Source: Macrostomum lignano
Lineage: Eukaryota
NCBI GenBank assembly: GCA_002269645.1
Contig: NIVC01000659.1
Coordinates: 248,001-312,000 of the forward strand
Length of the DNA: 64,000 bases
Direction: 5' to 3'
Shown: piece after piece, positions 26,101 to 51,583 of the stretch
Position numbering within the stretch: the first letter of the stretch is position 1
How the letters are laid out: each line of letters begins with the position of its first letter
The notes under the pieces: generated by a model
What the model was told of the DNA's origin: nothing
What the model saw: the letters and a program-made list of their open reading frames with translations, nothing else
The model's database searches: none
Program-made: the position numbers and the translations under genes

Positions 26101-29100
26101 CATCGTTCAGCACAGACTCTCGACTAGACCGGGAAATCAAGGAGGCCCTGATCACGGACACGCTCAATCTCATCAATGTTGGCGCGGTTGACCGCAAGAA
26201 AGTAATTGAGGAGGAACGCCGAAAGATTCAGGACCGACTTTTCCAGCGGAACAGCAGGAAGGAGACCAAGTGAGTTGCCCCGGCTGAGGCCAGTCTCCCT
26301 TCTGGCAGTCGAATTTGATGATGAAGCTTAGCAAATGGAGAATCCCCATTCGCTGCGGCAGGAACCACTGCTACAGAGCTGCTCTCGGCCATAGACAATA
26401 AAAAATTCGCAATTCCCAGCTGCACCCGGCCATAGACAATAAAAACTCGCAATTCCCAGCTGCACCCGGCCATAGACAATAAAAACTCGCAATTCCCAGC
26501 TGCACCCGGCCATAGACAATAAAACCCGCAATTCCCAGCTGCACCGGCCTTAGACCATAAAAACTCGCAATTCCCAGCTGCACCCGGCCATAGACAATAA
26601 AACTCGCAATTCCCAGCTGCACCCGGCCATAGACAATAAAACCCGCAATTCCCAGCTGCACCCGGCCATAGACAATAAAAACTCGCAATTCCCAGCTGCA
26701 CCCGGCCATAGACAATAAAAACTCGCAATTCCCAGCTGCACCCGGCCATAGACAATAAAAACTCGCAATTCCCAGCTGCACCCGGCCATAGACAATAAAA
26801 ACTCGCACTTCCCAGCTGCACCCGGCCATAGACCATAAAAACTCGCAATTCCCAGCTGCACCCGGCCATAGACAATAAAAACCCGCAATTCCCAGCTGCA
26901 CCCGGCCATAGACCATAAAAAGTCGCAATTCCCAGCTGCACCCGGCCATAGACAATAACAACTCGCACTTCCCAGCTGCACCCGGCCATAGACAATAAAG
27001 TAAAACTCCCCCACAGACTGCAAGCAAAGCAAGCGGCTTAAGGCTGTTCTCTCTGGTTTAAAGTTAAAGTTCTCTTGAATCGAAGAATTTCAAAGCACGA
27101 AAGTTGAATTCTGTCTTCACTTGGGGCAGATTGTGCCGCAGCAAATGAGCATTCTCAACTTACCTGCTAACCTGCTAATTTGGGGCTTGTTTTTACAATA
27201 GTAACAACATGTTTCTCCCAATTTTAAGGAGCGAAATTTACCAACGGGAAAGGTATCATTTTCGATTCAGTTCTTTCGTACAAAGTGTACTTTTATTTTA
27301 TTGCGCTACTTAAACGAGTTTATATCTCTCTACATTGGTATAGAGTATACTGTGAAGCTCATTGTACCATACATTTCACAACATCAATACCCGTGTGATA
27401 TTAACCAAATAAAAATATTAATCTTCAGTTTTAGAGTGGCCTATTATATTTATTGTGCGCTATTGTCTTGCCGCTTATCTTTGTGAAACTGTCATTCAGT
27501 GTGCAATCCAGTGTTTATCTTACCGACTATTGTTGTAATATTGTATTTGTTGCTTTTGTTTAGCAAAATAATTAATTTGAAAAAGTGAGACCCGATCCCA
27601 TGGAACAGTGACAATTTACCAATACAATTAGTGAAAATTTACCGATACAATCGGTGACAAGTTACCAGCCAAATCAGTGACAGTTAAGCAACCAAATCAG
27701 TGACAATTTAACAACCAAGTCAGTGCAAATTCAGACACTGAGAGTTTACCAATTCAGACACTGAGAGTTTATCAATTCAGACACTGAGAGTTTCTCAATT
27801 CAGACACTGAGAGTTTATCAATTCAGACACTGAGAGTTTATCAATTCAGACACTGAGAGTTTACCAATTCAGACACTGAGAGTTTATCAATTCAGACACT
27901 GAGAGTTTACCAATTCAGACAATGAGAGTTTACCAATTCAGACACTGAGAGTTTATCAATTCAGACACTGAGAGTTTACCAATTCAGACACTGAGAGTTT
28001 ATCAATTCAGACACTGAGAGTTTATCAATTCAGACACTGAGAGTTTACCAATTCAGACACTGAGAGTTTACCAATTCAGACACTGAGAGTTTACCAATTC
28101 AGACACTGAGACGTCACTTCGCCAACCCGCACAGGGAGGACCTGGAGAAGGAGGCCGCCAAGTACGCTGAGATTCAAGAGGCCTACGAGCTGCAGCACAT
28201 GGGGAATTTCAGGCGCATCTACCCGGAGCCCACCGATCAGTCGGCACAGAGCGGTCGCTACGCCCGTTTCCTGGCGCAGGGCGGCTTCCTCTACCAGGAG
28301 ACCGCGGCCACGAGAGCTCGGGCGGACTGCGCCAGACAGCAGCGGGAGGAGCTGAGCAGGAAGGCCGCCGGCAGCCAGCTGGGGCCGACAGGTCGACAGC
28401 GCCGAGTCGGTGGCACCGGCGCCGGCGCAGCGGCTCGATCTGAGAGTCCCGACAGACCGACGCTGCGCCGGCCGCAGCAAACCCGATCGAGAGTCCGCCA
28501 ACAGCAGCAGCAGCAGCAGGGAGCAGCTGGCTGTGTCAGAGAGGTTAGTGAGTCGGAGACGACAGTCAGGCCCCGCCTGATGTCGGCACAGAGCGACGAC
28601 CGTCGGCCAGTGAGGGGGGCCGGCAGGCTGACCAGCGCCAGGCCGAGGACCTGCGGCGGCGGCAGCGGCGGCATCGCTTGGCCAGATGAGGTGTCCCATA
28701 TATTCGTCATTTGTGGGGCGACACTCCTGGGAGGCTGGAGTCGAATTCGAATTTGGAATAACCAACTCATTTTTTGCCCTACTAACTGCTCAAGCTGTCT
28801 GAATTGAATCTCACCCATAGATTTGAGAGGCCAACCCTAAATCTCACCCTTAGGTTTGAAAGATCAACCCTAAATCTCACCCTTAGGTTTGAAAGATCAA
28901 CACTAAATCTCATCCTTAGATTTGAAGGATCAACCCTAAATCTCATCCTTAGATTTTAAGGATCAACCCTAAATCTCATCCTTAGATTTTAAGGATCAAC
29001 CCTAAATCTCACCCTTAGGTTTGAAAGATCAACCCTAAATCTCACCCTTAGGTTTGAGAGGCCAACCCTAAATCTCACCCTTAGGTTTGAAAGATCAACC

Positions 29101-32100
29101 CTAAATCTCACCCTTAGGTTTGAAGGATCAACCCTAAATCCCACCCTTAGGTTTGAAAGATCAACCCTAAATCTCACCCTTAGGTTTAAAAGATCAACCC
29201 TAAATCTCATCCTTAGATTTGAAGGATCAACCCTAAATCTCACCCTTAGGTTTAAAAGATCAACCCTAAATCTCACCCTTAGGTTTAAAAGATCAGCCCT
29301 AAATCTCATCCTTAGATTTGAAGGATCAACCCTAAATCTCACCCTTAGGTTTAAAAGATCAACCCTAAATCTCACCCTTAGGTTTAAAAGATCAGCCCTA
29401 AATCTCATCCTTAGATTTGAAGGATCAACCCTAAATCTCACCCTTAGGTTTAAAAGATCAACCCTAAATCTCACCCTTAGGTTTAAAAGATCAACCCTAA
29501 ATCTCACCCTTAGGTTTAAAAGATCAACCCTAAATCTCACCCTTAGGTTTAAAAGATCAACCCTAAATCTCATCCTTAGATTTAAAAGATCAACCCTAAA
29601 TCTCATCCTTAGATTTGAAGGATCAACCCTAAATCTCACCCTTAGATTTGAAGGATCAACCCTAAATCTCACCCTTAGGTTTAAAAGATCAACCCTAAAT
29701 CTCACCCTTAGGTTTAAAAGATCAACCCTAAATCTCACCCTTAGGTTTAAAAGATCAGCCCTAAATCTCATCCTTAGATTTGAAGGATCAACCCTAAATC
29801 TCACCCTTAGGTTTAAAAGATCAACCCTAAATCTCACCCTTAGGTTTAAAAGATCAGCCCTAAATCTCATCCTTAGATTTGAAGGATCAACCCTAAATCT
29901 CACCCTTAGGTTTAAAAGATCAACCCTAAATCTCACCCTTAGGTTTAAAAGATCAACCCTAAATCTCATCCTTAGATTTAAAAGATCAACCCTAAATCTC
30001 ATCCTTAGATTTGAAGGATCAACCCTAAATCTCACCCTTAGATTTGAAGGATCAACCCTAAATCTCACCCTTAGGTTTAAAAGATCAACCCTAAATCTCA
30101 CCCTTAGGTTTAAAAGATCAACCCTAAATCTCACCCTTAGGTTTAAAAGATCAGCCCTAAATCTCATCCTTAGATTTGAAGGATCAACCCTAAATCTCAC
30201 CCTTAGGTTTAAAAGATCAACCCTAAATCTCACCCTTAGGTTTAAAAGATCAGCCCTAAATCTCATCCTTAGATTTGAAGGATCAACCCTAAATCTCACC
30301 CTTACGTTTAAAAGATCAACCCTAAATCTCACCCTTAGGTTTAAAAGATCAACCCTAAATCTCACCCTTAGGTTTAAAAGATCAACCCTAAATCTCATCC
30401 TTAGGTTTAAAAGATCAACCCTAAATCTCACCCTTAGGTTTGAGAGGCCAACCCTAAATCTCACCCTTAGGTTTGAAAGATCAACCCTAAATCTCACCCT
30501 TAGGTTTATAAGATCAACCCTAAATCTCATCCTTTGATTTAAAAGATCAACCCTAAATCTCATCCTTTGATTTAAAAGATCAACCCTAAATCTCATCCTT
30601 AGATTTGAAGGATCAACCCTAAATCTCACCCTTAGATTTGAAGGATCAACCCTAAATCTCACCTTTAGGTTTAAAAGATCAACCCTAAATCTCACCCTTA
30701 GGTTTAAAAGATCAACCCTAAATCTCACCCTTAGGTTTAAAAGATCAGCCCTAAATCTCATCCTTAGATTTGAAGGATCAACCCTAAATCTCACCCTTAG
30801 GTTTAAAAGATCAACCCTAAATCTCACCCTTAGGTTTAAAAGATCAGCCCTAAATCTCATCCTTAGATTTGAAGGATCAACCCTAAATCTCACCCTTACG
30901 TTTAAAAGATCAACCCTAAATCTCACCCTTAGGTTTGAAAGATCAACCCTAAATCTCACCCTTAGGTTTGAGAGGCCAACCCTAAATCTCACCCTTAGGT
31001 TTGAAAGATCAACCCTAAATCTCACCCTTAGGTTTGAAGGATCAACCCTAAATCCCACCCTTAGGTTTGAAAGATCAACCCTAAATCTCACCCTTAGGTT
31101 TAAAAGATCAACCCTAAATCTCATCCTTAGATTTGAAGGATCAACCCTAAATCTCACCCTTAGGTTTAAAAGATCAACCCTAAATCTCATCCTTAGATTT
31201 GAAGGATCAACCCTAAATCTCATTTATAGATTTGAAAGATCAACCCAAAATCTTACTTTTAGATTTGAGAGAACAACCCAAAAATCCCACTAATAGATTT
31301 GAAAGATCAACCCTAAATCTCACTTATAGATTTGAAAAATCAGCCCTAATCTCACCCTTAGATTTGACAGATCAATCCTAAATCTCATCCTTAGATTTGA
31401 AAGAGCAGCCCTAAATCTCATCCTTAGATTTGAAAGAGCAGCCCTAAATCTCATCCTTAGAATTCCAAGGATAAAAGTACAGTTTAAGACCCTGATTAAC
31501 TCCTCAATATTTGCAACCGTTGAAAAGTTGAACTAACCGCCTTTTTCAAACGTTAAAAATCGTCGTTTTTTGCTACTAACAGTAGCGTTATTCCGCTGAA
31601 ATACCGCTTACTGCTGCTGCCGCTGCCGCTGCCGCCGTGCCTACCATGCTTTGCCGATTGTCCTTATTAACAACACAATTGCTCGGCTGCGCTGTTGACT
31701 GCTTTTTTGCTGCTTTTGCTGCCAATAATCTTTTCGTGTTGCCGTGCGATAACAAGAAGCAGGATGTCCAGGACCGGACAGAGTATTTGAGATTGGGTAT
31801 TAGAGATAAATCTCAGGTATTAGAGAGGGGAAACTCGGGTATTATAGACGGGTAATCTTGGGTATTAGAGCCAGGATAATCTTGGGTATTAGAGACGGAG
31901 AATCTTGGGTATTAGAGACGGAGAGTCTTGGGTATTAGAGACGGAGAATCTTGGGTATTAGAGACGGAGAATCTTGGGTATTAGAGACGGAGAATCTTGG
32001 GTATTAGAGCCAGGATAATCTTGGGTATTAGAGACGGAGAATCTTGGGTATTAGAGACGGAGAGTCTTGGGTATTAGAGACGGAGAATCTTGGGTATTAG

Positions 32101-34603
32101 AGACGGAGAATCTTGGGTATTAGAGCCAGGATAATCTTGGGTATTAGAGACGGAGAATCTTGGGTATTAGAGACGGAGAGTCTTGGGTATTAGAGCCAGG
32201 ATAATCTTGGGTATTAGAGACGGAGAATCTTGGGTATTAGAGCCAGGATAATCTTGGGTATTAGAGACGGAGAATCTTGGGTATTAGAGCCAGGATAATC
32301 TTGGGTATTAGAGACGGAGAATCTTGGGTATTAGAGACGGAGAGTCTTGGGTATTAGAGCCAGGATAATCCTGGGTATTAGAGACGGGGTATCTTGGGTG
32401 TTAGAGACGGAGAGTCTTGGGTATTAACAACGGAGAATCTTGGGTATTAGAGACGGGGTATCTTGTTCATTTGAGACGGGGAATCTTGGGTATTAGAGAT
32501 GGGAAATCTTGGGTATTAGAGATGGGAAATCTTGGGTATTAGAGATGGGAAATCTTGGGTATTCGAGATTGGATATTAGAGACTGGGGAATCTAAGGCAT
32601 TAGAGACGGGAAATCTCGGGTATTAGAGGCCGGGGAATCTTTGGTATTATTGAAGTATGGACGGGAAATCTTGGGTTTTATTGGTTAAGATGCTCAATTT
32701 AAACTACTAATAGTAGACTAGCCGTTACAAAATATTTTATAAAGGAAAATATCAAACTAAAATCTCTCCCAGGCTTCGACGCCAATTGTTGACATGCTGA
32801 CGCCGCAGCCAATCATAGACGAGGAGGAGATCGACAGGCTGTCGGGTCTGATGCAGCGGGACAATTTGGTTCGCGGTCTGGGCATTGTGGAGCAGGTGTA
32901 CCGGCTGCTCCACTGTACACCTGGCACCGTGGCCTCAATGCCGGTAGATCCACAGCAGCAGCAGCAGCAACAGAAACAGCAGCAGCAGCAGCAGCCATAC
33001 CAGTCAAGCCTATTAGCGGCAAATAGTCGCTACCTGGACGAGCTGTCGAATCGTTTAGGCGTTGCCATGCTAACCGGAAGTTATGCGGCCGCGGCTGCGG
33101 CAGCCGCTGCAGCGACCAGTGCCGCGGCACCGTCAGGAGCTCTGCAGCAGCAGCAGCAGCAGCAGCGGACTGCAGCCGCCCAGCCGCCAGCTCGGCAGTG
33201 GATGCGACCAGGGAGCCGCCATCATCGACTGGCCTTTGGTCAGCGGGTTGGCAGCGACTACGGCTCGGCTGGCAAGGCCCGCAGCTACGGTGGGGAGGGG
33301 CTGTTGATGGCCTTGGAGAGACTGGGGAATCTTGGGTATTAGAGACTGGGGAATCCTAGGTATTAGAGACTGGGGAATCTTGGGTATTAGAGACTGGGGA
33401 ATCCTGGGTATTAGAGACGGGGAATCTTGGGTATTAGAGACTGGGGAATCTTGCGTATTAGAGACTGGGGAATCTTGCGTATTAGAGACAGGGGAATCTT
33501 AGGTATTAGGGACGGGAGAATCTTGGGTATTAAAAACGGGGAATTTTGGGTATCAGGAACGGGAAGTCTTGAGTATAAGAGACGTGGAATCTTGGGTACT
33601 AGAAACGGGGAATCTTGGGTATTAGGGACTGGGGAATCTTGGGAATCAGGGACGGGGAATCTTGGGTATTAGAGACGTGGAATCTTGGGTACTAGAAACG
33701 GGGAATCTTGGGTATTAGAGACTAGGGAATCTTGGGTATTAGAGACAGGGGAATCTTGGGTGTTAGAGACAGAGGAATCTCGGGTATTAGAGACTGGGGA
33801 ATCTTGGGTATTAGAGACGGGGAATCTTGGGTATTAGAGACTGGGTAATCTTGCGTATTAGAGACTGGGGAATCTTGCGTATTAGAGACTGGGGAATCTT
33901 GGGTATTAGAGACAGGGGAATCTTAGGTATTAGGGACGGGAGAATCTTGGGTACTAGAAAGGGGAATCTTGGGTGTTAAAGACTGGGGAATCTTGGGTAT
34001 TAGAGACTGGGGAATCTTGGGTATTAGAGACTGGGGAATCCTGGGTGTTAGGGGCGGGGAATCCTGGGTAGTAGAGACGGGAAATATTGGGTATTAGGGA
34101 CGGGGAATCCTGGGTATTGAGGACGGGGAATCCTGGGTATTAGAGACGGGAAATCTTGGGTATTAGGGGTGGGGAATCCTGGGTAGTAGAGACGGGAAAT
34201 ATTGGGTATTAGGGACGAGGAATCCTGGGTCGGAGTCGTGTAAGCAGGTATCTCAGTCAGTGGCAATCTGACTAACCCAGCTCGGCAATCTCAAACCCCG
34301 ACAGGACCGGCGAAGCTTGGTCAGTATGGAGTCAGACAGCAGCAGCAGCAACAGCAGCAGTTCGTCTTGGGTAGCGGCCTATCAGCAGCGAGTCTGTCCG
34401 TGATGTCAGCCCCAATGGCTGGCCGTCCAGTTGAAGACAACGCTGCACATCAGCAGCTGGGCGGTGGCGGCGGCATGCAGACTGGCAAGCGGCTGCCGAA
34501 GCAGCTGCCGGCCAAGGTGGCACCTGCTGGACGGCGAGTTGGCAGCGGCGGCGACGGAGGGAACGGTCCGACTGTTGGCAGTTCGGCGATCCTGCTGCGA
34601 TGA
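21529..34603 (+). CDS. TTLL6: Tubulin polyglutamylase TTLL6/TTLL13-like, 11 coding exons
   Basis: Exons 21529-22076, 22259-22299, 22391-22509, 22920-23053, 23388-23544, 23740-23883, 24013-24101, 25862-26269, 28135-28690, 32773-33289 and 34281-34603, all GT-AG with matching phases. TTL motifs: [86 protein letters not shown]. The last three exon boundaries are less certain, and TTLL6 versus TTLL13 cannot be resolved by eye. Confidence 0.92.
22566..22624. mobile_element. 59-bp micro-MITE-like hairpin, CCATAGACA...TGTCTATGG
   Basis: 9-bp inverted termini; the same termini occur at 9179-9236. Confidence 0.5.
23113..23357. repeat. (GACA)n plus (ACTAAGAC)n compound microsatellite in a TTLL intron
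   Basis: Direct inspection. Confidence 0.9.
23632..23710. repeat. 22-bp tandem repeat (ATCCATATTGACTAGATTAGCA), ~4 copies
   Basis: Direct inspection. Confidence 0.85.
24102..25790. repeat. G-rich ~21-25-bp minisatellite (GGGGAAATGGGATCGGTGTGTGT) filling a TTLL intron
   Basis: Direct inspection; it starts at the splice donor. Confidence 0.95.
26387..27000. repeat. ~40-bp minisatellite (GGCCATAGACAATAAAAACTCGCAATTCCCAGCTGCACCC), ~15 copies
   Basis: Direct inspection. Confidence 0.95.
27735..28110. repeat. 23-bp minisatellite (CAATTCAGACACTGAGAGTTTAY)
   Basis: Direct inspection. Confidence 0.95.
28810..31460. repeat. 33-bp minisatellite (CCCTAAATCTCACCCTTAGGTTTAAAAGATCAA), ~80 copies, with higher-order structure
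   Basis: Direct inspection; the 11-aa periodic antisense ORF is an artefact. Confidence 0.97.
31790..32620. repeat. 23-bp minisatellite (CTTGGGTATTAGAGACGGAGAAT)
   Basis: Direct inspection. Confidence 0.93.
33320..34230. repeat. 23-24-bp minisatellite (CTTGGGTATTAGAGACTGGGGAAT), same family as 31790-32620
   Basis: Direct inspection. Confidence 0.93.
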
Positions 34604-36137: not shown

Positions 36138-37545
36138 GATCCAGACACAATGCAGAGCCAGTTACCAGATCCAGACACAATGCAGAGTCAGCTACCAGAT
36201 CCAGACACAATGAAGAGTCAGCTACCAGATCCAGACACAATGAAGACTCGTTACCAGATCCAGACACAATGAAGTCAGTTACCAGATCCAGACACAATGA
36301 AGAGTCAGCTAACAGATCCAGACAATGAAGAGTCAGCTACCAGATCCAGACACAATGAAGAGTCAGCTAACAGATCCAGACACAATGAAGAGTCAGCTAC
36401 CAGATCCAGACACAATGAAGAGTCAGCTACCAGATCCAGACACAATGCAGAGTCAGCTACCAGATCCAGACACAATGAAGAGTCAGTTACCAGATCCAGA
36501 CACAATGAAGAGTCAGCTACCAGATCCAGACACAATGCAGAGTCAGCTACCAGATCCAGATACAATGAAATCAGTTACCAGATCCAGACACAATGCAGAG
36601 TCAGCTACCAGATCCAGACACAATGAAGAGTCAGCTACCAGATCCAGACACAATGCAGAGTCAGCTACCAGATCCAGATACAATGAAGAGTCAGCTACCA
36701 GATCCAGACACAATGAAGAGTCAGCTACCAGATCCAGACACAATGAAGGGTCAGCTACCAGATCCAGACACAATGAAGAGTCAGCTACCAGATCCAGACA
36801 CAATGAAGAGTCAGCTACCAGATCCAGACACAATGCAGAGTCAGCTACCAGATCCAGACACAATGAAGAGTCAGCTACCAGATCCAGACACAATGAAGAG
36901 TCAGCTACCAGATCCAGACACAATGAAGGGTCAGCTACCAGATCCAGACACAATGAAGGGTCAGCTACCAGATCCAGACACAATGCAGAGTCAGCTACCA
37001 GATCCAGACACAATGAAGAGTCAGCTACCAGATCCAGACACAATGAAGACTCGTTACCAGATCCAGACACAATGAAGACTCGTTACCAGATCCAGACACA
37101 ATGAAGAGCCAGTTACCAGATCAAGACACAATGAAGACTCGTTACCAGATCCAGACACAATGAAGACTCGTTACCAGATCCAGACACAATGAAGAGCCAG
37201 TTACCAGATCCAGACACAATGAAGACTCGTTACCAGATCCAGACACAATGAAGAGCCAGTTACCAGATCCAGACACAATGAATACTCGTTACCAGATCCA
37301 GACACAATGAAGACTCGTTACCAGATCCAGACACAATGAAGACTCGTTACCAGATCCAGACACAATGAAGAGCCAGTTACCAGATCCAGACACAATGAAT
37401 ACTCGTTACCAGATCCAGACACAATGAAGACTCGTTACCAGATCCAGACACAATGAAGAGCCAGTTACCAGAACCAGACACAATGAAGAGCCAGTTACCA
37501 GATGCAGACACAATGAAGAGCCAGTTACCAGACACAGACACACAA
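36138..37545. repeat. 30-bp minisatellite (CAGATCCAGACACAATGAAGAGTCAGCTAC) between the convergent TTLL and SEC13 3' ends
   Basis: Direct inspection. Confidence 0.96.
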
Positions 37546-38135: not shown

Positions 38136-41100
38136 TCACTGCTCCTCAGAGTTGGCCGGAGCGTTCAGGCAGATCCACTGGCCGTCCAGGCTCTCCTTCC
38201 ACAGGCTGACTTTGTTGTCGCCGCTGCTCACCGCCAGCAGGTTGCCGGTGACGCTCCAGCTGACGTGCCAGAGGACGTCTTGGAATGGCGGCAGGGTGAC
38301 GGAGCTCCAGGAGGTGTCCTCGTCGCGACGGGTCCAGATAATAACCCGGCAGTCCTAAGGATTCAGATTGGGAATAGCGAATGGGCTACAAATAGAAGGG
38401 CCCAGCAACTGGGGATCTGGGAGGCTGGCCCAGCAACTGGGGATCTGGGAGGCTGGCCCAGCAACTGGGGATCTGGGAGGCTGGTGGCCCAGCAACTGAG
38501 GATCTGGGAGGCTGGTGACCCAGCAACTGAGGATCTGGGAGGCTGGCCGAGCAACTGAGGATCTGAGGGGTGGCCCAGCAACTGAGGATCTGGGAGGCTG
38601 GCCGAGCAACTGAGGATCTGGGAGGCTGGCCCAGCAACTGAGGATCTGGGAGGCTGGTGGCCCAGCAACTGAGGATCTGGGAGGCTGGTGGCCCAGCAAC
38701 TGGGGATCTGGGAGGCTGGCCCAGCAACTGGGGATCTAGGAGGCTGGCCCATCGACTGAGGATCTGGGAGGCTGGCCCAGCAACTGAGGATCTGGGAGGC
38801 TGGCCCAGCAACTGAGGATCTGGGAGGCTGGCCCAGCAACTGAGGATCTGGGAGGCTGGTGACCCAGCAACTGAGGATCTGGGAGGCTGGTGACCCAGCA
38901 ACTGAGGAGCTGGGAGGCTGGTGACCCAGCAACTGAGGATCTGGGAGGCTGGCCCAGCAACTGGGGATCTGGGAAGCTGGTGGCCCAGCAACTGAGGATC
39001 TGGGAGGCTGGTGACCCAGCAACTGAGGATCTGGGAGGCTGGCCGAGCAACTGAGGATCTGGGAGGCTGGTGGCCCAGCAACTGGGGATCTGGGAGGCTG
39101 GCCGAGCAACTGAGGATCTGGGAGGCTGGCCCAGCAACTGAGGATCTGGGAGGCTGGTGGCCCAGCAACTGGGGATCTGGGAGGCTGGCCCAGCAACTGA
39201 GGATCTGGGAGGCTGGCCCAGCAACTGAGGATCTGGGAGGCTGGCCCAGCAACTGAGGATCTGGGAGGCTGGTGACCCAGCAACTGAGGATCTGGGAGGC
39301 TGGTGACCCAGCAACTGAGGAGCTGGGAGGCTGGTGACCCAGCAACTGAGGATCTGGGAGGCTGGCCCAGCAACTGAGGATCTGGGAGGCTGGCCCAGCA
39401 ACTGAGGATCTAGGAGGCTGGCCCATCGACTGGGGATCTGGGAGGCTGGCCCAGCAACTGAGGATCTGGGAGGCTGGTGACCCAGCAACCGAGGATCTGG
39501 GAGGCTGGTGACCCAGCAACTGAGGATCTGGGAGGCTGGCCCAGCAACTGAGGATCTGGGAGGCTGGCCCAGCAACTGGGGATCTAGGAGGCTGGCCCAT
39601 CGACTGGGGATCTGGGAGGCTGGCCCAGCAACTGAGGATCTGGGAGGCTGGCCCAGCAACTGGGCATCTGGGAGGCTCGCCCAGCAACTGAGGAGCTGGG
39701 AGGCTGGTGACCCAGCAACTGAGGATCTGGGAGGCTGGCCCAGCAATTGGGGATCTGGGAGGCTGGCCCAGCAACTGAGGATCTGGGAGGCTGGCCCAGC
39801 AATTGGGGATCTGGGAGGCTGGCCCAGCAACTGAGGATCTGGGAGGCTGGCCTAGCAACTGGGGATCTGGGAGGCTGGCCCAGCAACTGAGGATCTGGGA
39901 GGCTGGCCCAGCAACTGAGGATCTGTGTAGAATGGGGATCGCATCGCACCTGGCCGCAGCTGGCAATCATGTCTCTGGACAGTCCGAGATTGGGCGCCCA
40001 GGCGACGTCGCGCACCCAGTCCGAGTGGCCCTCCAGAGTGCTCTCGCGGGACCACTGAGCGCCGTCGGGTTCCAGACGCCAGACGCGCACCTGTCAGCGG
40101 CCGGGAATAGCAACAAGGATTAACATGTGTATAATTTAGAAGTAACATATCAAGGTCATCCGTCATCCCCGTCACCTGTCCATCGCAGCCGCCGGATACC
40201 AGGCGCCGAGCGGTCGGTGCCGAGCCGCGACCACCGGCGGCGTCATCGGCGGCTGAGGAGGCCACGGGCGGGCAGAGCAGCGAGCTGGGCTGAGTGGCCG
40301 GGGCCCAGCTGACCGCGTTGACACCGATGGTGTGCGCGTTGGGGATTTTTGAGGTCTCCCAGTTGCCATCCTGAATAAACGCAGGTATGTTCTATTTTTT
40401 TGGATACATATCGGCTGAGTGAACCTATTTTCGATACATATCGGCTGGGTGAACCTATTTTCGATACATATCGGCTGACTAAACCTATTTTCTATACATA
40501 TCGGTTGACTAAACCTATTTTCTATACATCGGTTGACTAAACCTATTTTCGATACATATCGGTTGACTAAACCTATTTTCGATACATATCGGTTGACTAA
40601 ACCTATTTTCTATACATCGGTTGACTAAACCTATTTTCGATACATATCGGTTGACTAAACCTATTTTCTATACATCGGTTGACTAAACCTATTTTCTATA
40701 CATATCGGATTATTGAACCTATTTTCGATACATATCGGCTGTGGCATACATTCAAATTTTAATTGAGTAAGCTAGAACAGCTAACCTGGCCGCAGGTGAC
40801 CACAGAGATGCTGCCATCAGAGGAGGCGCAGGCAAACATTAATCCGTACTCGTGCGGTGCCCAAGCCACAGAATTAACGCTGCTCTCGTGCTGCGCGTGT
40901 TCATAAACAACCTCCCATTGCTGGTGCTGCTGTTGACGCTGCTGGTGCTGTTGCGGCGCTGCGGCGGACTCTCGCCAGACCAGCACTCGCCGATCGTAGC
41001 TGCAGGAGGCCAGCAGGGAGCCGTGAACAGGATGCGACCAGGCCACCTGCCACACAGGCCCCTCGTGTCTGGCCAGAGTGCACAGCAGCGATTGGCCGCG

Positions 41101-41289: not shown

Positions 41290-42255
41290 CAGTGGGGGCG
41301 ATTCTTGGGGTGGGTGACTGAATGAGGGGCGATTCTTGGGGTGGGTGACTGGATGAGGGGCGATTCTTGGGGTGGGTGAGGGGCGATTCTTGGGGTGGGT
41401 GACCGGGTGAGGGTCGATTCTTGGGGTGGGTGACTGGGTGAGGAGCGATTCTTGGGTGGGTGACTGAATGAGGGGCGATTCTTGGGGTGGGTGACTGAAT
41501 GAGGGGCGATTCTTGGGGTGGGTGACTGGGTGAGGAGCGATTCTTGGGTGGGTGACTGAATGAGGGGCGATTCTTGGGGTGGGTGACTGAATGAGGGGCG
41601 ATTCTTGGGGTGGGTGACTGGGTGAGGAGCGATTCTTGGGTGGGTGACTGAATGAGGGGCGATTCTTGGGGTGGGTGACTGAATGAGGGGCGATTCTTGG
41701 GGTGGGTGACTGGGTGAGGAGCGATTCTTGGGTGGGTGACTGAATGAGGGGCGATTCTTGGGGTGGGTGACTGAATGAGGGGCGATTCTTGGGGTGGGTG
41801 ACTGGGTGAGGGGCGATTCTTGGGGTGGGTGACTGGGTGAGGAGCGATTCTTGGGGTGGGTGACTGGGTGAGGAGCGATTCTTGGGGTGGGTGAGGGGCG
41901 ATTCTTGGGGTGGGTGACTGGGTGAGGGGCGATTCTTGGGGTGGGTGACCGGGTGAGGGGCGATTCTTGGGGTGGGTAACTGAATGAGCGGCGATTCTTG
42001 GGGTGGGTGACTGAATGAGGGGCGATTCTTGGGGTGGGTGAGGGGCGATTCTTGGGGTGGGTGACTGGGTGAGGAGCGATTCTTGGGGTGGGTGACTGAA
42101 TGAGGGGCGATTCTTGGGGTGGGTGAGGGGCGATTCTTAGGAATGGGTGAGGGGCGATTCTTGGGAATGGGTGAGGGGCGATTCTTGGGGTGGGTGAGGG
42201 GCGATTCTTGGGGTGGGTGAGGGGTGATTCTTAGGGTGGGTGAAGGGCGATTCCT
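41290..42255. repeat. G-rich ~23-31-bp minisatellite (GAGGGGCGATTCTTGGGGTGGGTGACTGAAT) ~60 bp upstream of the SEC13 ATG
   Basis: Direct inspection. Confidence 0.94.
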
Positions 42256-43409
42256 GGGTTGGCTGTGACAATTCAGGTGCCAGGTGAACAAAAGTGGCTA
42301 TTAGGAGTGAGGCAGTCGACTGGGAAAAATATTTTAAAGACAAAAGAGAAGATATACTATAGCAGCCGAAGTCGCATTTTGCAACAACTGGATAGCTATA
42401 ATGTATATTAATGATAACTCAATGTTAGTACGAAGTTAGTTTAGTAATTAATAGCTGTGTCAACTGAATACATAGATTTGAGTATTGTATTGACGACAGA
42501 GTCTTTCACTGACAACAGACTTTAACTCTACATACACTTACTAATCAGCTAATCTCTTAAAACATCTTATTAGAAGATCAGCACAGCAACGCTTATTTAA
42601 AAATTTATAGACCAAAGCCAGCCAATCAAAATACAAAAACCGGCTGGGGCCAATAAAATACAGAAGAGAAAGAGAGAGAATTTAAAAGAAGAAGCAAACA
42701 GCAAAGCACCGCTAGTCAGAGAAACGAAGAGGAAAAAGTTGATTAATATTTCAAATATTGATTTAATTTTTTAAAGCGCAGTAAAAGACCATATGATAGC
42801 CAAGAGAAAAGTGAAATGTTTGTTTTCAAATTGAATTATTTGATAAAAGGAAGCGAATAAAACCACATTAAGCAGATAAAATTAATACTATTATTACACA
42901 ATTATTGATAATTTTCGACGCAAAATAATAAATTGTAGTTCTGACAATAAAGGACTGTGTTTACTGATCAAAACTAATTCAAAAGCAAAGCGCATTTGCG
43001 TCACTTTATGCATTTCGCATTTATAACAACTCTATTTAGACTACTTGAGTCAGTAGCAAGTTAAGCGCTAACACAAACGACTCTTGGACGACTTTAGTCA
43101 TTTTAGTAATAAGTTGAGCTCATTTTTGACACTCCTGTCGATCACAGCAAACACAGTCTGGAAACTTTTGCAACACACCTCGTATAAGCCGCAAAATTAG
43201 AGATAAAAAAGAAGACAACATGACAGTCAAGACACAGGAGCATACACTCATATTGTGGCAATATAATAATTCTTAGATTATTCAGTAGGAAGTAGCAGGC
43301 TGAGGCCTTGATTAGTTTTAATCGTCGTGCCCTGGCGACATCGGATGCTGCAATGGGAAATATGTAAGGGAATTGATTGACAACGTAAATTAATTTTTGA
43401 CTAACAAAA

Positions 43410-44050
43410 TAGGCGCCAATTTAGCGCCTTAGTCTACATTTCAGGCGCCAATTTAGCGCCGCAGTCTACATTTTAGGCGCCAATTTAGCGCCGCAGTCTA
43501 TATTTTAGGCGTCAATTTAGCGCCGCAGTCTACATTTCAGGCGCCAATTTAGCGCCGCAGTCTACATTTTAGGCGTCAATTTAGCGCCGTAGTCTACATT
43601 TCAGGCGCCAATTTAGCGCCGCAGTCTACATTTTAGGCGTCAATTTAGCACCGCAGTCTACATTTCAGGCGCCAATTTAGCACCGCAGTCTACATTTCAG
43701 GCGCCAATTTAGTGCCGCAGTCTACATTTCAGGCGCCAATTTAGCGCCGTAGTCTACATTTCAGGCGCCAATTTAGCGCCGCAGTCTACATTTTAGGCGT
43801 CAATTTAGCGCCGCAGTCTACATTTCAGGCGCCAATTTAGCGCCGCAGTCTACATTTTAGGCGCCAATTTAGCGCCGTAGTCTACATTTCAGGCGCCAAT
43901 TTAGCGCCGCAGTCTACATTTTAGGCGCCAATTTAGCGCCGCAGTCTACATTTTAGGCGCCAATTTAGCGCCGCATCTACAACTCTACATTTAGGCGTCA
44001 ATTTAGCGCCGCAGTTTACAACTCTACATTTTAGGCGCCAATTTAGCGCC
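43410..44050. repeat. 32-bp minisatellite (AGGCGCCAATTTAGCGCCGCAGTCTACATTTT), ~19 copies
   Basis: Direct inspection. Confidence 0.94.
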
Positions 44051-44385: not shown

Positions 44386-47300
44386 TCACTTGTGGCCTGG
44401 ATTCGGGTGCTGCGTTTGAGCTTCATGATGTTCAGGTGTCTTATCATGATGTTCAGGTGTCTTGTCATCATGATGTTCAGGTGTCTTATCATGATGTTCA
44501 GGTGTCTTATCATGACGTTCAGGTGTCTTATCATGATGTTCAGGTGTCTTATCATGATGTTCAGGTGTCTTGTCGTCATGATGTTCAGGTGTCTTATCAT
44601 GATGTTCAGGTGTCTTATCATGATGTTCAGGTGTCTTATCATGATGTTCAGGTGTCTTATCATGATGTTCAGGTGTCTTATCATGATGTTCAGGTGTCTT
44701 GTCATCATGATGTTCAGGTGTCTTATCATGATGTTCAGGTGTCTTATCATGATGTTCAGGTGTCTTGTCATGATGTTCAGGTGTCTTATCATGTTCAGGC
44801 TTCTTATCATCATGATGTTCAGGTGTCTTGTCATCATGATGCTCATCATCCTTATCATGTCGTCCACTGTCTCGGTGGTCGTCGTGCTCCCGACTGTCCC
44901 GGTCATCCCGGTCGCGGCGATCCCGTCTGTCTCGATCGCGCCCACCGAGCAGCTGCAAAATTTCGTACTTCTACTACTGACATGAAGCTGACATGCTACT
45001 GACATGAAGCTGACATGCTACTGACAGACAAGGAGGCCCTCTTTATTCAATATCCAGCAAAAGCATGGAACTATCTCTATAAAAAAGTTGCAGACAGCTC
45101 AATAGCATTTTGATTGACAGGCCCCACACCCAGACGCTTACGTCCTCATCGTCGTCCGGGTGCTCGCGATCGTAATCGTCCTCGAACTGCTTGAATTCGT
45201 CGTCCTTGTAGGGCGGCGCGTCGTCCTCTTCGGAGGTCTGGGTGAGCGCGAGGGAAGGAGGTATATATAGGTTTGGGTGGCTCTTGAGTAGGCTGAAGAC
45301 AAGAGTAAAAAAGGCCAAGAGGCCAAACGGACAAGAGGCCAAAGAAACAAGAGGCCAAAGGGACAAGAGGCCAAAAGGGACAAGAGGCCAAAGGGACAAG
45401 AGGCCAAAGGGCTAAGAGGCCAAAGGGACAAGAGGCCAAAGGGACAAGAGGCCAAAGGGACAAGAAGCCAAAGGGCTAAGAGGCCAAAGGGCTAATAGGC
45501 CAAAGGGCCAGGAGGCCAAAGGGCTAATAGGCCAAAGGGCCAGGAGGCCAAAGGGCTAATAGGCCAAAGGGCCAGGAGGCCAAAGGGCTAATAGGCCAAA
45601 GGGCCAGGAGGCCAAAGGGCCAAAAGGGCAAAGGGCCTAGAGGGAAGATTGAGCCAAGAGCCAAGAGACCAAAGGGACAAGAGGTCAAAGGAAAAGAGGC
45701 CAAAGGGCCAAGAGGCCAATATAAACCCCAAACCCACCTTCCAATCATCGTCCTTCTTGAAGTCGGGATTCTTAGTCCACCGCTCGAACTCATCCCAGCT
45801 GATCATCATGTCCTTGTTGGTGTCGACCTTGTCCAGCACCTCCTGCCGCATCCGCTCCATCTCGTGCTGCTTCTCTAACGCATTTACCGTAGTATCGTTA
45901 GTGCGATTGTAGGCCTTCTCCAGCTGTTGGCGGGGGGTCAGTTTGATATGAAAAACTTGTATTATGGGGTCATTTAAGGTCAAGCAATGATTTTCATAAT
46001 CAACACACTACTGACACCTTTTTATGCATTTCTTCTAAATTCTAAAACTAAAAAATAAAATCTTTGCTTTTTCATACCGCAGCACCTGCTAAAATATCAA
46101 AGCAAGTCTACAAATAGAAAGCAAGCTAAACTACCTTTAGTTGCCTTTAAAAAATTATCTAAATTGATTTTCTGCTACTATTAGTAATGACTCACTTCAA
46201 TTGAAGATGCACAATGAGACGAAAATTTATTGGAAGCAAAAATGGAAGATAGTTTAATTTATGGATTCTACATACATACTACTTAACAAATCTAATAAGT
46301 AGTAAGTAGCACACGAACCTCTTTCAGGAATAGCGCTTCAATCTCGTTAACGTCCAAATGCCCGTCGCCATTGACGTCTAGAAATTGACAACAGAATCGA
46401 GATGCGTTTAACTGATTCTTGATTGTACTATTGTCTACTAACAGTAGTCAAAAAACAGCTTGCAGAATCCAATGCTAACAAAGAAAAAACAAAGACTCAG
46501 CCGTTACCATGCAGTAGGAAAAATGTTTTCGGATTGAAAGAATCCTTGTCCATGTGGTCCTCATCAGCCCAGGCGTCCCGCAGCTGCTCACTGCTGCCCT
46601 GTTAGGGATATATTTGGCATTTTGAAGACAAAATCGGGCCAAAAGGAAAAAAACAAAGGACTTTTGTTCAGTAGGAAAAAATAGCCTTTTGAAAAACACC
46701 TGCAAATTAAATTTGACATAGTAACAGCAGACACCGAAGTAATGCCTACATTTTAGGTTTATTAATTGTAACTTTCTGATATTTCTACTGTTAGTAAAGC
46801 GGAATGGAATGTTTATTTATTTTTTGTCAGAATGTCGTGTTTTTTGATTGATCTCAGACTAAATCAGAAAGATATAGTAACTACAAAACCGAAAAGAATA
46901 AACAAAAGTAACAAGAAAAGTCGATCGAGATCAAACTAATCTCCCGAATTCCTGAAAGACTCAGTCGTTACCGTGCAAATTAAAAAATGTTTTCGCGTCG
47001 AATTCTTGACTAAGTCCGTCCTGATTGGTCCACAGGTCCATCAGCTGGGCCAGACTGCCCTGGACGCGTTATTTTATAACTTTGCACTTTTGTAAAGTTT
47101 CAGAACTTGGGAGATTTCGAGAAACTGGGCCATGAGAGATGAAGTGCGACTATGGGTCAGCTGGGGTCATGAGGGGTGACTGTGGGTCAGCTGGGGTCAT
47201 GAGGGTGACTGTGGGTCAGCTGGGGTCATGAGGGGTGACTGCGGGTTAGCTGGGGTCATGAGGGATAACTGTGGGTCAGCTGGGGTCATGAGGGTGACTG

Positions 47301-50300
47301 TGGGTCAGCTGGGGTCATGAGGGTGACTGTGGGTCAGCTGGGGTCATGAGGGATAACTGTGGGTCAGCTAGGGTCATGAGGGATAACTGTGGGTCAGCTG
47401 GGGTCATGAAGGGATAACTGTGGGTCAGCTGGGGTCATGAGGGTGACTATGGGTCAGCTGGGGTCATGAGGGGTGACTGCGGGTTAGCTAGGGTCATGAG
47501 GGATAACTGTGGGTGTTTCAGAAATTGAAACACCCCCCCCCCAAGTTCCTAGTAACTGTTTCAAAGAGCAAGCTAAAAATGCGCAACAACGCACCGGATG
47601 GTGAATCTTTTCATGTTGCTTGTGCTTCTTTTTCTCTTCTTGGTATTCCTTCTCGGCCACTTCTCTGGCTTTGGTGTCGTTAATCTTGTGCAGCTTGCGC
47701 AGTCTCAGATGCTCCTTCATCATCTCGTACTGCTTGTATTGCTCCTAAATTGAAGAAAGGATAAGTAAGTTGTAGAAAACTACTGACTAGTGTCTATGGC
47801 CTACTGAGCGCTTCTTAACGAACTATCCCTCCTTGGTTACAGCATCTTGTTATCTTCCTCAGCATCTTGTTATCTTCCTCAGCATCTTGTTATCTTCCTC
47901 AGCATCTTGTTATCTTCCTCAACATCTTGTTATCTTCCTCGGCATCTTGTTATCTTCCTCAGCATCTTGTTATCTTCCTCAGCATCTTGTTATCTTCCTC
48001 AACATCTTGTTATCTTCCTCAGCATCTTGTTATCTTCCTCAGCATCTTGTTATCTTCCTCAGCATCTTGTTATCTTCCTCAGCATCTTGTTATCTTCCTC
48101 AGCATCTTGTTATCTTCCTCAGCATCTTGTTATCTTCCTCAGCATCTTGTTATCTTCCTATCTCTTGTTCATTCTTCATTCTCTTCTTCATTCTTCATTC
48201 TCTTCTTCATTCTTCTCTTCCTCATCCTCCCATCTCTTCCTCATCCCGCCATCTCTTCCTCATCCTCCCATCTCTTCCTTATCCTCCCATCTCTTCCTCA
48301 TCCTCATATCTCTTCCTCATCCTCCTATCTCTTCCTTATCCTCCCATCTCTTCCTTATCCTCCCATCTCTTCCTTATCCTCCTATCTCTTCCTCATCCTC
48401 CTATCTCTTCCTTATCCTCCCATCTCTTCCTCATCCTCCCATCTCTTCCTCATCCTCCCATCTCTTCCTCATCCTCCTATCTCTTCCTCATCCTCCCATC
48501 TCTTCCTCATCCTCCCATCTCTTCCTCATCCCGCCATCTCTTCCTCATCCTCCCATCTCTTCCTTATCCTCCCATCTCTTCCTCATCCCGCCATCTCTTC
48601 CTCATCCTCCCATCTCTTCCTCATCCTCCCATCTCTTCCTCATCCTCCTATCTCTTCCTTATCCTCCCATCTCTTCCTCATCCTCCTATCTCTTCCTCAT
48701 CCTCCCATCTCTTCCTCATCCTCCCATCTCTTCCTCATCCTCACATCTCTTCCTCATCCTCCTTTCTCTTCCTCATCCTCCCATCTCTTCCTCATCCTCC
48801 CATCTCTTCCTCATCCTCCCATCTCTTCCTCATCCTACCATCTTTTCCCCATCCTCCCATCTATTCATCATCCTCACATCTCTTCCACAGACTCCCATCG
48901 ATGCCTCCGATACCACAGCGCTCCCCAGCTCACCTGCTTGGCCTCGTCCACCCTGTGCATATCGGAGACCACTTGGCGAATCAATTTTTCCAAATCGGAC
49001 GACTCAAACGAATGGGGATTCTCGTGATCCAAATGAGCCTTCTTAATGGTCTCCTGGTCCATGTTGAACACATCCGGATGGATTGGAACTTCCGCTTCGC
49101 GCATCGGATTTCCGGCGGCAGCTTTTTTAGCTTCTAACATTTTCTCCAACGCGTTGAGCCGGTCAACCTCTTTGCGCTTGATCTCGTCTAGGCGAGTGCG
49201 CACAGAGTGGTCAACGAACTCCAGCTGGCTAGCCAAATCTCCCGCCTGCACAGTGGGGAAAATTTGTAGGAACAAATAAGAAGCAAAAACCCTACTGACA
49301 CCATTATCTGCTTGTCCATGCTTGTCTACCGCGGCGCTCTGATGTGCCAGGGGTCCCAAGGCTCGTTTCTAATCCAAGTGCAGTCACATTAATTTGGGGA
49401 TAAATTGGAATCTCCGCTTGCCTCTGCTTGTGCAATTAACGCCATTGAGGGCCAAACCCCAAGGCACAGTGAAGTGTACATGCCTAACGATAGATAAAGT
49501 TAGGGCCGCTGTACACTCCTGTGTGAGTGTGTGCCTGTGCGTATGACTGCGTACGTATTCTTGTGCTAATTGTGTGCCTGCTCAGGGGAGTCTGTGGAAT
49601 GGGGAAGCCTCTCTTGCTTCTAAATTTATATTATACACTATTCAAGCTGTGTCTGTGTCAGAATGTGCCGGGTAAGCTTCCTAGAGTTGAGTGGTAACTT
49701 CATTAAATTAATAAACAATAACTGCAATTTCTATATAATAACCTATAACTATATCAGGGGCTTGACAGCCAGATGAAAGAGGCCGACCGGCCGACGCCAC
49801 AGATACTAGAATAACTGGACGGGCCACTCAGCACATTTGCGTGCAAGCTACTTTCAGTTCAGTAGTAAGTTAAACTGAAGCATTTTAATGTATTTTTAAA
49901 GCCAAGGCTCATTTATTGGCTTTTGATTCCCAGCTTGAACCCTCCAACCGCGCCTTTCCACACTAACCCCGCCCCGCCCCAATTTTTATTGCCTTTCTCG
50001 GAAATCCAGCCTAAAGCTGCCATGTACATTTCAGTGGACTGGCCAATGTACATTATGGCTGAGCCAATTAGCAAGTTGTTTAAACCTGAAAGCTTGGGCT
50101 TCTAAACTTATTGAAGTTATTTCAGCCGCCTTTATTTTATAAAATAGTTTATGTATTCTTCTTTGCTACTGAACTGAAAGTAGAAAGCTGTTTTACTTAC
50201 TACATATGCCTGAGTGGCCCATCTGGTTATTTTAGTAGTATCTATGGCCGACCCCTAGTCTATATAGTCACTCCTAAATATATAAAAAACCAACCATCAC

Positions 50301-51583
50301 CACAAAAAAACGAATGGGTTATTAAAATAAACAAATCACTAAATAGTGCATTCAATAAGTTATTAACTAAAACAAGCGTATTAAGTAATTAAGCAATTAA
50401 GCTTCAAATCACGTTACTACAAGTAGTGTGAAACATGTAGTATATGCAAATAAATCTGGCTACGCTATAGGTGCACCACAACAGCACAAACGGGCAACGT
50501 GGAATCAAGCGCACAGTAAGAACATGCATTTTCAAAAATTGTCACCTCAGAAAGATTTTGAACTCGTTTAGCAAATTCCTTGTTTGATTCCAGAATCTGT
50601 GACACCTCTCTCACATAGTTTGCATAGGGCAAATGGGACTGAAAGTGTGATAGTTATGAATTAAGCTTGTTAAAACTAATAATCAGGTGCAATTAGGTTA
50701 TAAGCGGATAAGATAAATGCTTTATTTGTGCTGTTATTGTGTGTGAAAAAACTAATCCTGAAAATTAAAGAAAATGACAAAAACCTATCATTAGGAAAAA
50801 CAGCACCACAAATGCTAGAAAAAATTAAATAAATTAGATGAGAAATTCTTACAGGTAAGATCGCCAATTCTAACTAAAGTTTTTTTATTTTAGACAAAAA
50901 ACACATACACTCATCTTGTGAGTAGAATTCTTGAACTTTTCCCATTCGGACTTGAAATGCTTGTCCATGTGCAGGTGCGCCATGACCTCTTCGACATATT
51001 TTTTATAATCGTCAGGACTGTAGGCCTTCTGAAAACCAGCAATTTTTGGCCCGCAATTTTTGCAAGCTTTTAGAATTACAAACTGCCAAATGGCATCCTG
51101 CTGATTCTGGGTTAAAGTTGATGTGCGTAACACACAGACAACCTAATAAGAATGACAAACTTTCTTAAAGAATGTTACTATATATAATTCATACATGTAG
51201 TTTATGTTAGACACAATTTATTTGAAGCTCTGAAATATAAAAAAGAGAAATATCTTCTAATAGAAGATACACTCGTAACTTATTTAATGTTTGAATTTTA
51301 AACAATATAAACTATGATTTATGAAGGCAATTCATGTTTGCAATGACTCTAGCAATTCTTGTCACGGTATCATTTTTCAAATGGGGAGTGTATAGAATCA
51401 ATAAGCAGATCAATCAGTGTGGATTTAATAAAAAACACAGAATCTTACCAGCAAGTCATCAGCTGGTCCTGGCTTCTTTGCCACAACAGTGGGCGCAGGT
51501 TTTTTTACAACTGGGGGCGCAAAACAGCCAGTCAGACAGCAAAATAGAATAGCAGCCAATGCAGCTCGATGACAGTGCATCAT
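44386..51583 (-). CDS. NUCB2: Nucleobindin (NUCB1/NUCB2-like) secreted/Golgi EF-hand Ca2+-binding protein with alternative exons
   Basis: Exons 51583-51449 (signal peptide MMHCHRAALAAILFCCLTGCFA-PPV), 51028-50909 and/or 50638-50546, 49245-48934 (AGDLASQLEFVDHSVRTRLDEIKRKEV...LDHENPHSFESSDLEKLI), 47744-47595 (YEMMKEH...HEKIHHP), 47059-46972 or 46598-46508, 46377-46319 (EF1 DVNGDGHLDVNE), 45923-45738 (EMERMRQEV; EF2 DTNKDMMISWDE), 45237-45142 and 44952-44386. NUCB1 versus NUCB2 is not resolvable for an invertebrate gene. Confidence 0.92.
45310..45712. repeat. 16-18-bp minisatellite (AGGCCAAAGGGACAAG variants) in a nucleobindin intron
   Basis: Direct inspection. Confidence 0.9.
46508..46598 (-). 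CDS. Nucleobindin alternative exon B (GSSEQLRDAWADEDHMDKDSFNPKTFFLLH), 91 nt
   Basis: CTAACAG acceptor, G|GTAACGGCTGAGTCTTT donor, phase 0 to 1. Confidence 0.85.
46972..47059 (-). CDS. Nucleobindin alternative exon A (GSLAQLMDLWTNQDGLSQEFDAKTFFNLH), 88 nt
   Basis: CAG acceptor, G|GTAACGACTGAGTCTTT donor, phase 0 to 1. Confidence 0.8.
47150..47515. repeat. ~29-30-bp minisatellite (GGTCAGCTGGGGTCATGAGGGTGACTGTG) in a nucleobindin intron
   Basis: Direct inspection. Confidence 0.92.
47838..48895. repeat. Two adjacent pyrimidine-rich arrays: 20-bp CAGCATCTTGTTATCTTCCT, then 19-bp CATCTCTTCCTCATCCTCC
   Basis: Direct inspection. Confidence 0.93.
49328..49612 (+). mobile_element. tRNA-derived SINE, copy 3 (diverged, truncated), antisense in a nucleobindin intron
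   Basis: Shares GTGCAGTCACATTAATTTGGGG...AAATTGGAATCT...AAAGTTAGGGCCGCTGTACACTCCTGTGTGAGTGTGTGCCTG...CTCAGGGGAGTC with copies 1 and 2. Confidence 0.85.
49755..50257. mobile_element. Probable hAT MITE with ~70-bp subterminal inverted repeats
   Basis: 49800-49870 is the reverse complement of 50165-50245 (CTACTGAACTGAAAGTAG...GAGTGGCCC...GTTATT); termini CAGGGG / CCCCTA; flanks AACTATAT vs GTCTATAT (6/8 match). Confidence 0.55.

Follow-up and report, generated by a model that had tools for sequence, protein, structure and literature searches.

A tandem pair of candidate mutually exclusive exons beside EF-hand 1 in a nucleobindin gene of Macrostomum lignano

The IIIb and IIIc exons of FGFR2 have lengths that are not multiples of three, such that double inclusion or double skipping shifts the reading frame and nonsense-mediated decay (NMD) is expected. 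A second kind of exon cluster, represented by Dscam exon 6 and 14-3-3 zeta, relies on RNA pairing between a docking site and selector sequences. Exons that encode parts of EF-hands are reportedly exchanged as well: Waites et al. 1992 are said to have described EF-hand exons of non-muscle versus smooth-muscle alpha-actinin, and Bourinet 1999 and Chaudhuri 2004 to have described exons 37a and 37b of CaV2.1. Mutually exclusive exons that swap EF-hand parts, as in alpha-actinin and CaV2.1 exons 37a/37b, are a classical arrangement (PMC9177970, where these three papers are cited). Here we examine a candidate pair of this type, exons 5A and 5B of a nucleobindin gene, within a 64,000 nt stretch of DNA from the flatworm Macrostomum lignano (termed the window; coordinates refer to it unless another locus is named). 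The two exons lie in tandem ahead of the Ca2+-binding loop of EF-hand 1. We consider it rather probable that tandem duplication of one internal exon has given rise to a two-member mutually exclusive exon cluster that contributes one exon to each mRNA.

A nucleobindin gene with two versions of exon 5

The gene is encoded on the minus strand of contig NIVC01000659.1 (assembly Mlig_3_7) and corresponds to Mlig009833.g1; this locus (L002) matches the reverse complement of the window sequence at every one of its 28,272 bases. A full-length query recovered more than 200 nucleobindin homologues, with M. lignano proteins far ahead as the best matches, and the Ca2+-binding domain of human nucleobindin 1 (PDB 1SNL) aligns with the stretch running from exon 5B to exon 6 (E 8e-13). 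The NUCB1_N domain (PF25434) reaches 92.7 bits, above the cut-off of 27, whichever of two upstream exons, 2a or 2b, is included, and the Pfam EF-hand pair (PF13499) passes in both the 5A and the 5B forms. The N-terminus of the protein is hydrophobic and, by eye, resembles a signal peptide (AALAAILFCCLTGCFA). At the level of sequence comparison, the identity of the gene as a member of the nucleobindin (NUCB1/NUCB2) family is confirmed.

A second genomic copy of the gene (L003), in which 5A and 5B are both intact, resides on contig NIVC01000025.1. An assembly artefact was ruled out as the source of the exon pair because the pair is found on two separate contigs. Large duplicated blocks are a known feature of the DV1 line of M. 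lignano (PMC5730564). Four database proteins of the gene, P0001, P0121, P0122 and P0123, make up the whole of its 90% cluster. Two of them are GenBank entries, namely PAA78953.1 (P0121, from Mlig009833.g1) and PAA93516.1 (P0122, from Mlig004318.g1).

Constitutive exon 4 (47595..47744; this and all other exons of the gene are on the minus strand) encodes EQYKQYEMMKEH...HEKIHHP, ends in phase 0, can be joined to 5A or 5B, and is present in P0121. Exon 5A, the divergent upstream copy, occupies 46972..47059 and spans 88 nt that encode GSLAQLMDLWTNQDGLSQEFDAKTFFNLH plus 1 nt. It is separated by a 373 nt intron (46599..46971) from exon 5B, the family-typical copy (46508..46598), whose 91 nt encode GSSEQLRDAWADEDHMDKDSFNPKTFFLLH plus 1 nt. 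Both exons run from phase 0 to phase 1 and are followed by constitutive exon 6 (46319..46377), which begins in phase 1 and encodes the Ca2+ loop of EF-hand 1, DVNGDGHLDVNE, together with the exiting helix, (D)VNGDGHLDVNEIEALFLKE. An AG precedes each copy (...gtccag for 5A and ...ctaacag for 5B) and a GT follows it, and the same AG and GT dinucleotides are present in L003. The coordinates, lengths, paralogy and phases that an earlier note had assigned to the two exons, working from the sequence of the window, are borne out base for base.

The segment encoded by this exon is highly conserved across about 110 animal nucleobindins, with a consensus of 30 residues. It had been described previously as the entering helix of EF-hand 1. 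The segment does include this helix (KTFFxLH), but it also comprises about 21 residues ahead of EF-hand 1. We scanned all stop-free fragments of the window, on both strands, with a hidden Markov model (HMM) of nucleobindins built from about 110 proteins without any from Macrostomum. Exon 5A matches profile positions 230-261 with 31.5 bits (E 2.9e-8), and exon 5B matches positions 230-259 with 44.4 bits (E 3.7e-12). Aligned directly with each other by tblastn, the two share 47% identity (E 2.6e-5). These results support the interpretation that 5A and 5B are genuine tandem paralogues and that both correspond to the nucleobindin exon ahead of the EF-hand 1 loop.

When spliced in silico, exons 4+5A+6 and exons 4+5B+6 both read through. 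Inclusion of both copies (4+5A+5B+6) yields ...FFNLHGQQ and then a stop, three codons into 5B. Skipping of both (4+6) shifts the frame and yields ...IHHPTSMATGIWTLTRLKRYS, with a stop 20 codons past exon 4. Because neither 88 nor 91 is divisible by three, an mRNA stays in frame only if it contains one, and no more than one, of the two exons. This confirms the earlier argument that including both gives a stop and skipping both shifts the frame, so that only one can be used. The products of double inclusion and double skipping carry an early stop and several downstream exon junctions and would be removed by NMD or would yield a truncated protein. Exclusivity would then be enforced by the reading frame and not by the spliceosome. 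Two ways in which splicing itself could keep the exons apart were rejected: the intervening intron of 373 nt is too long for steric exclusion of joint 5A and 5B splicing, and the two donors are of the same GT type, which rules out U2/U12 incompatibility.

Exon 5B would serve as the default exon, because its sequence is family-typical, its pyrimidine tract is better and it is used in every model. Exon 5A, kept as coding sequence, would be chosen rarely or under particular conditions; we infer its use in mRNA from sequence features. The stop produced by double inclusion also allows a different role for 5A, namely that of a regulatory 'poison' exon that makes no variant protein and lowers nucleobindin output whenever it is spliced together with 5B. 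Poison exons are typically weak exons that lie beside a strong one. However, conservation of 5A tracks codons and amino acids, with family-invariant residues kept and synonymous sites free to change, and the sole difference in 5A between L002 and L003 is synonymous. This is the pattern expected of a translated exon rather than of a switch acting at the RNA level, and we consider a poison exon very improbable.

If both isoforms are made, they would differ at 16 of the 30 residues that form the flank and entering helix and share the Ca2+-ligand loop, which exon 6 encodes. Exon 5A retains the hydrophobic core positions (L6, W10, L/M16, F, TFF, LH), the number of charged residues falls from 10 in 5B to 5 in 5A, and the helix-capping Pro of FNPKTFF is replaced by Ala. 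Since the ligand loop sits in constant exon 6, the swap would be expected to alter the protein surface, or the capping and start of the helix, more than Ca2+ ligation itself. The 'retuned Ca2+ binding' suggested by the earlier note is speculation.

Evidence on the coding status of exon 5A

The main competitor to a mutually exclusive pair is that 5A is a pseudo-exon, an unspliced relic in intron 4 of a gene that makes only the 5B form. Comparison of the two copies bears directly on this. Exons 5A and 5B are identical at 53 of 88 nt; synonymous sites are close to saturation (pS 0.73), and pN is 0.32. The surrounding introns have decayed to the point that they cannot be aligned upstream of the acceptors or beyond 17 nt after the donors. 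Yet 5A contains no stop, differs in length from 5B by a single in-frame gap of 3 nt, and retains exact AG/GT splice sites. This combination argues that the duplication is old and that 5A has been constrained as coding sequence. A long-dead relic would be expected to look otherwise, and the data would fit a pseudo-exon only if its death were very recent.

The residues that 5A preserves are also informative. It agrees with 5B at 12 of 15 columns that are conserved in at least 85% of sequences across animals, but among 15 variable columns it does so at only 2 (Fisher p 7e-4). In addition to matching the family profile (E 3e-8), 5A makes a valid Pfam EF-hand, and EF-hand_7 scores 40.6 bits with 5A versus 36.7 bits with 5B. 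Single-sequence AlphaFold predictions give the same helix-loop-helix order with either exon, at low confidence (pLDDT 56 and 53 for the two models). Several traits of 5A recur in natural nucleobindins (P0152 and P0155), namely a length of 29 residues, FD[AV]KTFFNLH without the usual Pro, and DG[LI]; 5A itself reads FDAKTFFNLH and DGL. P0152 carries FDVKTFFNLHDVNGD, and P0155 carries a 29-residue version of the segment. These observations support the view that 5A bears the marks of a translated exon.

The two genomic copies of the gene provide a further comparison. Between L002 and L003, 5A has one change, a synonymous one, and 5B has none. Aligned sequence outside the exons differs by about 2.7% locally and by 5.3% across the gene. 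Both changes in exon 2a are likewise synonymous, and the chance that all three transitions (5A and exon 2a together) would be synonymous is about 0.035. Constitutive exon 3, for its part, has 9 changes, several of which are replacements.

Several observations weigh against the use of 5A and favour the pseudo-exon. The test for selection has low power because the copies are too alike, with one change observed in 5A versus about 2.4 expected, and this comparison is too weak to rule out neutrality. All four database proteins of the gene carry 5B and none carries 5A. The 5A acceptor is pyrimidine-poor (..aaaataacgcgtccag) and its donor is weak (GTAACG). Exon 5A is the most divergent version of the segment seen, with a mean family identity of 0.47 versus 0.55 for 5B, and it lacks the near-universal Pro. 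Finally, the element that follows the 5A donor is degraded in L003, where the 17-mer reads GTAACTACTAAGTCCTG, shares 12 of 17 positions with the 5B element, and carries four changes inside 12 nt.

The missing database models are weak evidence, however, because annotation filters drop minor isoforms. The GenBank models of M. lignano were made with TACO at --isoform-frac 0.75 followed by a 'coregenes' filter, a procedure that discards minor isoforms (PMC5730564). The protein searches aimed at 5A are likewise uninformative. A 99-aa query of exons 4+5A+6 found no match, in a type of search that also missed P0001 and P0121 despite the long identical stretches they share with the query, and a 193-aa query containing 5A returned distant homologues only, missing even the known 5B proteins of this gene. 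Considering the codon-level constraint together with these points, we regard a pseudo-exon as unlikely, while taking it seriously. The mutually exclusive reading is structurally sound and is supported by evolutionary evidence, as far as sequence comparison can carry it.

The 17 nt that follow each donor were previously put forward as nearly identical flanks. In the window copy this is correct: the 17-mer after 5A (46955..46971, minus strand; GTAACGACTGAGTCTTT) and that after 5B (46491..46507, minus strand; GTAACGGCTGAGTCTTT, followed by a T-rich run) agree at 16 of 17 positions and read GTAACG[A/G]CTGAGTCTTT. Beyond the 17-mer, the intron between 5A and 5B has no likeness to the intron after 5B. 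The near-identity does not extend to L003, given the 12 matching positions there, and the element is weaker evidence for a conserved regulatory sequence than had been assumed.

A comparison of window positions 46971-46947 with L003 positions 14383-14407 revealed five substitutions in the 25 nt after the 5A donor and five in the remaining 348 nt of the intron. At four of the five clustered sites, the window copy carries the base found in the 5B flank. These clustered changes could reflect decay of the element in L003 or a short gene conversion from the 5B flank in the window copy. A role for the 17-mer in docking and selector RNA pairing was rejected, as the best duplexes in introns 3 to 6 are no better than those formed by shuffled selectors. 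No reverse-complement copy of CTGAGTCTTT is present within the gene.

The remaining exons and the surroundings of the gene

Exon 1 (51449..51583) contains the start codon and encodes the hydrophobic, signal-peptide-like N-terminus (MMHCHRAALAAILFCCLTGCFA...). It is followed by exon 2a (50909..51028; 120 nt, phase 0-0, KAYSPDDYKKYVEEVMAHLHMDKHFKSEWEKFKNSTHKMS), which is used in UniProt models P0001 and P0123, and by exon 2b (50546..50638; 93 nt, phase 0-0, SHLPYANYVREVSQILESNKEFAKRVQNLSE), which the transcript-derived GenBank models P0121 and P0122 contain. Exon 3 (48934..49245) encodes the rest of the NUCB1_N domain. Downstream of exon 6 are exon 7 (45738..45923), which encodes EF-hand 2 (DTNKDMMISWDEF), and exon 8 (45142..45237; TSEEDDAPPYKDDEFKQFEDDYDREHPDDDED), whose acceptor at 45237 is taken from P0121. 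The terminal coding exon of the GenBank model (43318..43347) spans 30 nt and encodes HPMSPGHDD followed by the stop codon. This transcript-derived model comprises exons 1, 2b, 3, 4, 5B, 6, 7 and 8 plus the small last exon.

Exons 2a and 2b form a second paralogous pair. Both match the nucleobindin HMM at about positions 58-92, within the NUCB1_N domain, with E values of 0.01 and 3.9e-5, respectively; 2a reads ..DDYKKYVEEVMAHLHMDKHFKSEWEKF.. and 2b reads ..PYANYVREVSQILESNKEFAKRVQNL... Joint inclusion or joint skipping of these two exons stays in frame, and their exclusivity is not enforced by the frame. The M. lignano paralogue of the gene has one exon of the 2a/2b type. The models that use 2a contain an irregular junction: P0001 and P0123 join ...NSTHK to AGDL..., and at this point the window (50920-50903, minus strand) reads CACAAG and then ATGAGTgtatgt, with no GT donor. 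L003 also lacks a GT at the NSTHK/AGDL junction; a splice at the sole in-frame GT, 6 nt downstream, would add Met-Ser. The junction is either an error in the models or a difference present in the older ML2 assembly.

The 3′ end of the gene is also modelled in more than one way. An open, exon-like stretch with a good acceptor (44952-44386, minus strand) encodes about 20 tandem TPEHHDK heptads and corresponds to 19 tandem copies of a 21-nt repeat, in which all insertions and deletions relative to L003 are multiples of 3. P0001 uses the start of this stretch, and the GenBank model skips it in favour of the 30 nt terminal exon. The stretch may encode an alternative His-rich C-terminus. Current M. 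lignano models lack 5A and are at odds over 2a/2b and the 3′ exon, and isoform-aware re-annotation is warranted.

A SEC13-like WD40 gene lies directly downstream of the nucleobindin gene (41253-38136, minus strand). UniProt entry P0123 (635 aa, named 'Calmodulin') is a chimeric model in which the nucleobindin is fused to SEC13. Beyond SEC13, GenBank annotates a tubulin-tyrosine-ligase-like gene of about 1000 aa (approximately 33318-34603, plus strand). Upstream of the nucleobindin gene it annotates a hAT-transposase-like gene (61481-59910, plus strand) that encodes 523 aa with a weak Dimer_Tnp_hAT match.

Minisatellite arrays are very numerous in the window and are mostly intronic, with periods of 15-40 nt and tens of copies. 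One, in an intron of SEC13, consists of about 53 copies of a 28 nt unit (38399-39925). Other examples occupy 2445-3431, 9824-11433, 12981-14096, 24101-25787, 28807-31460, 36138-37542, 41295-42126, 43411-43981, 45309-45719, 47148-47514 and 47840-48899. These arrays account for strong local swings in GC skew, such as the value of 0.78 at 24001-26000, and the lengths of the repeats differ between L002 and L003. Their abundance fits the report that tandem repeats make up 15% of the M. lignano genome (PMC5730564).

Mytilus nucleobindins and other exon systems

According to the earlier note, no arrangement like that of 5A and 5B was known in vertebrate nucleobindins, and this holds for the vertebrate proteins examined, each of which showed one type of segment. 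Nevertheless, the arrangement is not new to nucleobindins, as Mytilus has it and RefSeq annotates it there as isoforms. In Mytilus galloprovincialis (L004, OZ263151.1), two tandem exons of 91 nt are located at 13191-13281 and 14020-14110 of that locus, about 740 nt apart, and inclusion of both leads to a premature stop. RefSeq lists isoform pairs for M. galloprovincialis, M. edulis and M. californianus in which precisely this exon alternates; one example among several in M. galloprovincialis is the pair XP_076116084.1 (X1) and XP_076116085.1 (X2). Mytilus isoforms also vary by two small cassette segments, ELPVLETDME and GMDVFHYISIHG. A literature search found no paper that describes the exon pair of either the M. 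lignano or the Mytilus nucleobindin.

The nucleobindin-2-like gene of Mytilus thus resembles the M. lignano gene in having two tandem copies of the same exon, with the same boundaries (G-S... to ...H|D), phase (0 to 1) and length of 91 nt, and its isoforms X1 and X2 differ in the 30-residue segment alone. The two cases also differ in several respects. Both Mytilus copies are annotated as used, whereas in M. lignano 5B alone is annotated. The two Mytilus copies share 67% identity and are each typical of the family, whereas 5A and 5B share 47% and 5A departs from the family type. Furthermore, the Mytilus exons have no common intronic element after their donors, unlike those of M. lignano. The Mytilus case is known from database annotation alone.

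The shared exon, boundaries, phase and 91 nt length in two phyla raise the prospect that the pair is an ancient spiralian feature inherited by flatworm and mussel from a common ancestor. Exon 5B is also nearer to one Mytilus version, v1 (60%), than to the other, v2 (50%). Against shared descent, no 5A-like remnant was found in Lottia (L005), a rotifer (L006) or Mlig034413, the M. lignano paralogue (L001), each of which has a single exon 5, and both scallop isoforms carry the same segment. Moreover, Mytilus v1 and v2 resemble each other (67%) more than either resembles the flatworm exons, and the typical copy is upstream in Mytilus but downstream in M. lignano. A segment of thirty residues is too short for tree building. 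The three loci returned by a metagenome scan for relatives of flatworms come from an unrelated animal and have another intron layout and no duplicate. Because the exon is single in Lottia, the rotifer and the M. lignano paralogue, it was probably duplicated independently in the mussel and Macrostomum lineages, to judge from these comparisons, and we consider descent from a common pair most unlikely.

Use of 5A would give M. lignano two nucleobindins whose sole difference is the surface beside EF-hand 1. This would provide a natural experiment on the role of the conserved segment (GSxxQLxxVW...), which is poorly defined in NUCB1/2, in a transgenic, regenerating flatworm model. The Mytilus parallel suggests that this exon tolerates, or rewards, diversification. 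A broader proposal, which we offer only tentatively and with considerable doubt, is that the 91 nt exon flanking EF-hand 1 is a hot spot in nucleobindins that was duplicated independently in the flatworm and in mussels and was kept exclusive in both. Together with 2a/2b it might yield up to four M. lignano forms, with 5A providing a low-charge flank without Pro that confers a distinct partner or Ca2+ response and is possibly tissue-specific.

Among the systems introduced at the outset, the FGFR2 IIIb/IIIc pair has the same frame arithmetic as 5A/5B. Its tissue-specific regulators and intronic elements are well mapped, whereas in M. lignano the 17-mer is the only candidate element. The Dscam exon 6 and 14-3-3 zeta clusters are similar in that a short, similar intronic sequence lies beside each variable exon, but introns 3 to 6 of the M. 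lignano gene contain no complementary docking sequence. In CaV2.1 (the P/Q channel), tandem exons likewise provide an alternative EF-hand-like helix region and tune Ca2+-dependent behaviour. That protein belongs to another family, its EF-hand is non-canonical, and the function of its exons is known from electrophysiology, whereas the M. lignano pair is known from its sequence.

Alpha-actinin offers the parallel of a duplicated exon pair that swaps part of the first EF-hand to give isoforms from one gene. Those isoforms are experimentally established, and the exchange bears on the ability of the EF-hand itself to bind Ca2+. In M. lignano, by contrast, constant exon 6 encodes the 12-residue ligand loop, and variation is confined to the flank and entering helix. 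Set beside these systems, the M. lignano pair is a real but fairly ordinary exon duplication, and tandem-duplicated alternative exons are a common type in invertebrates.

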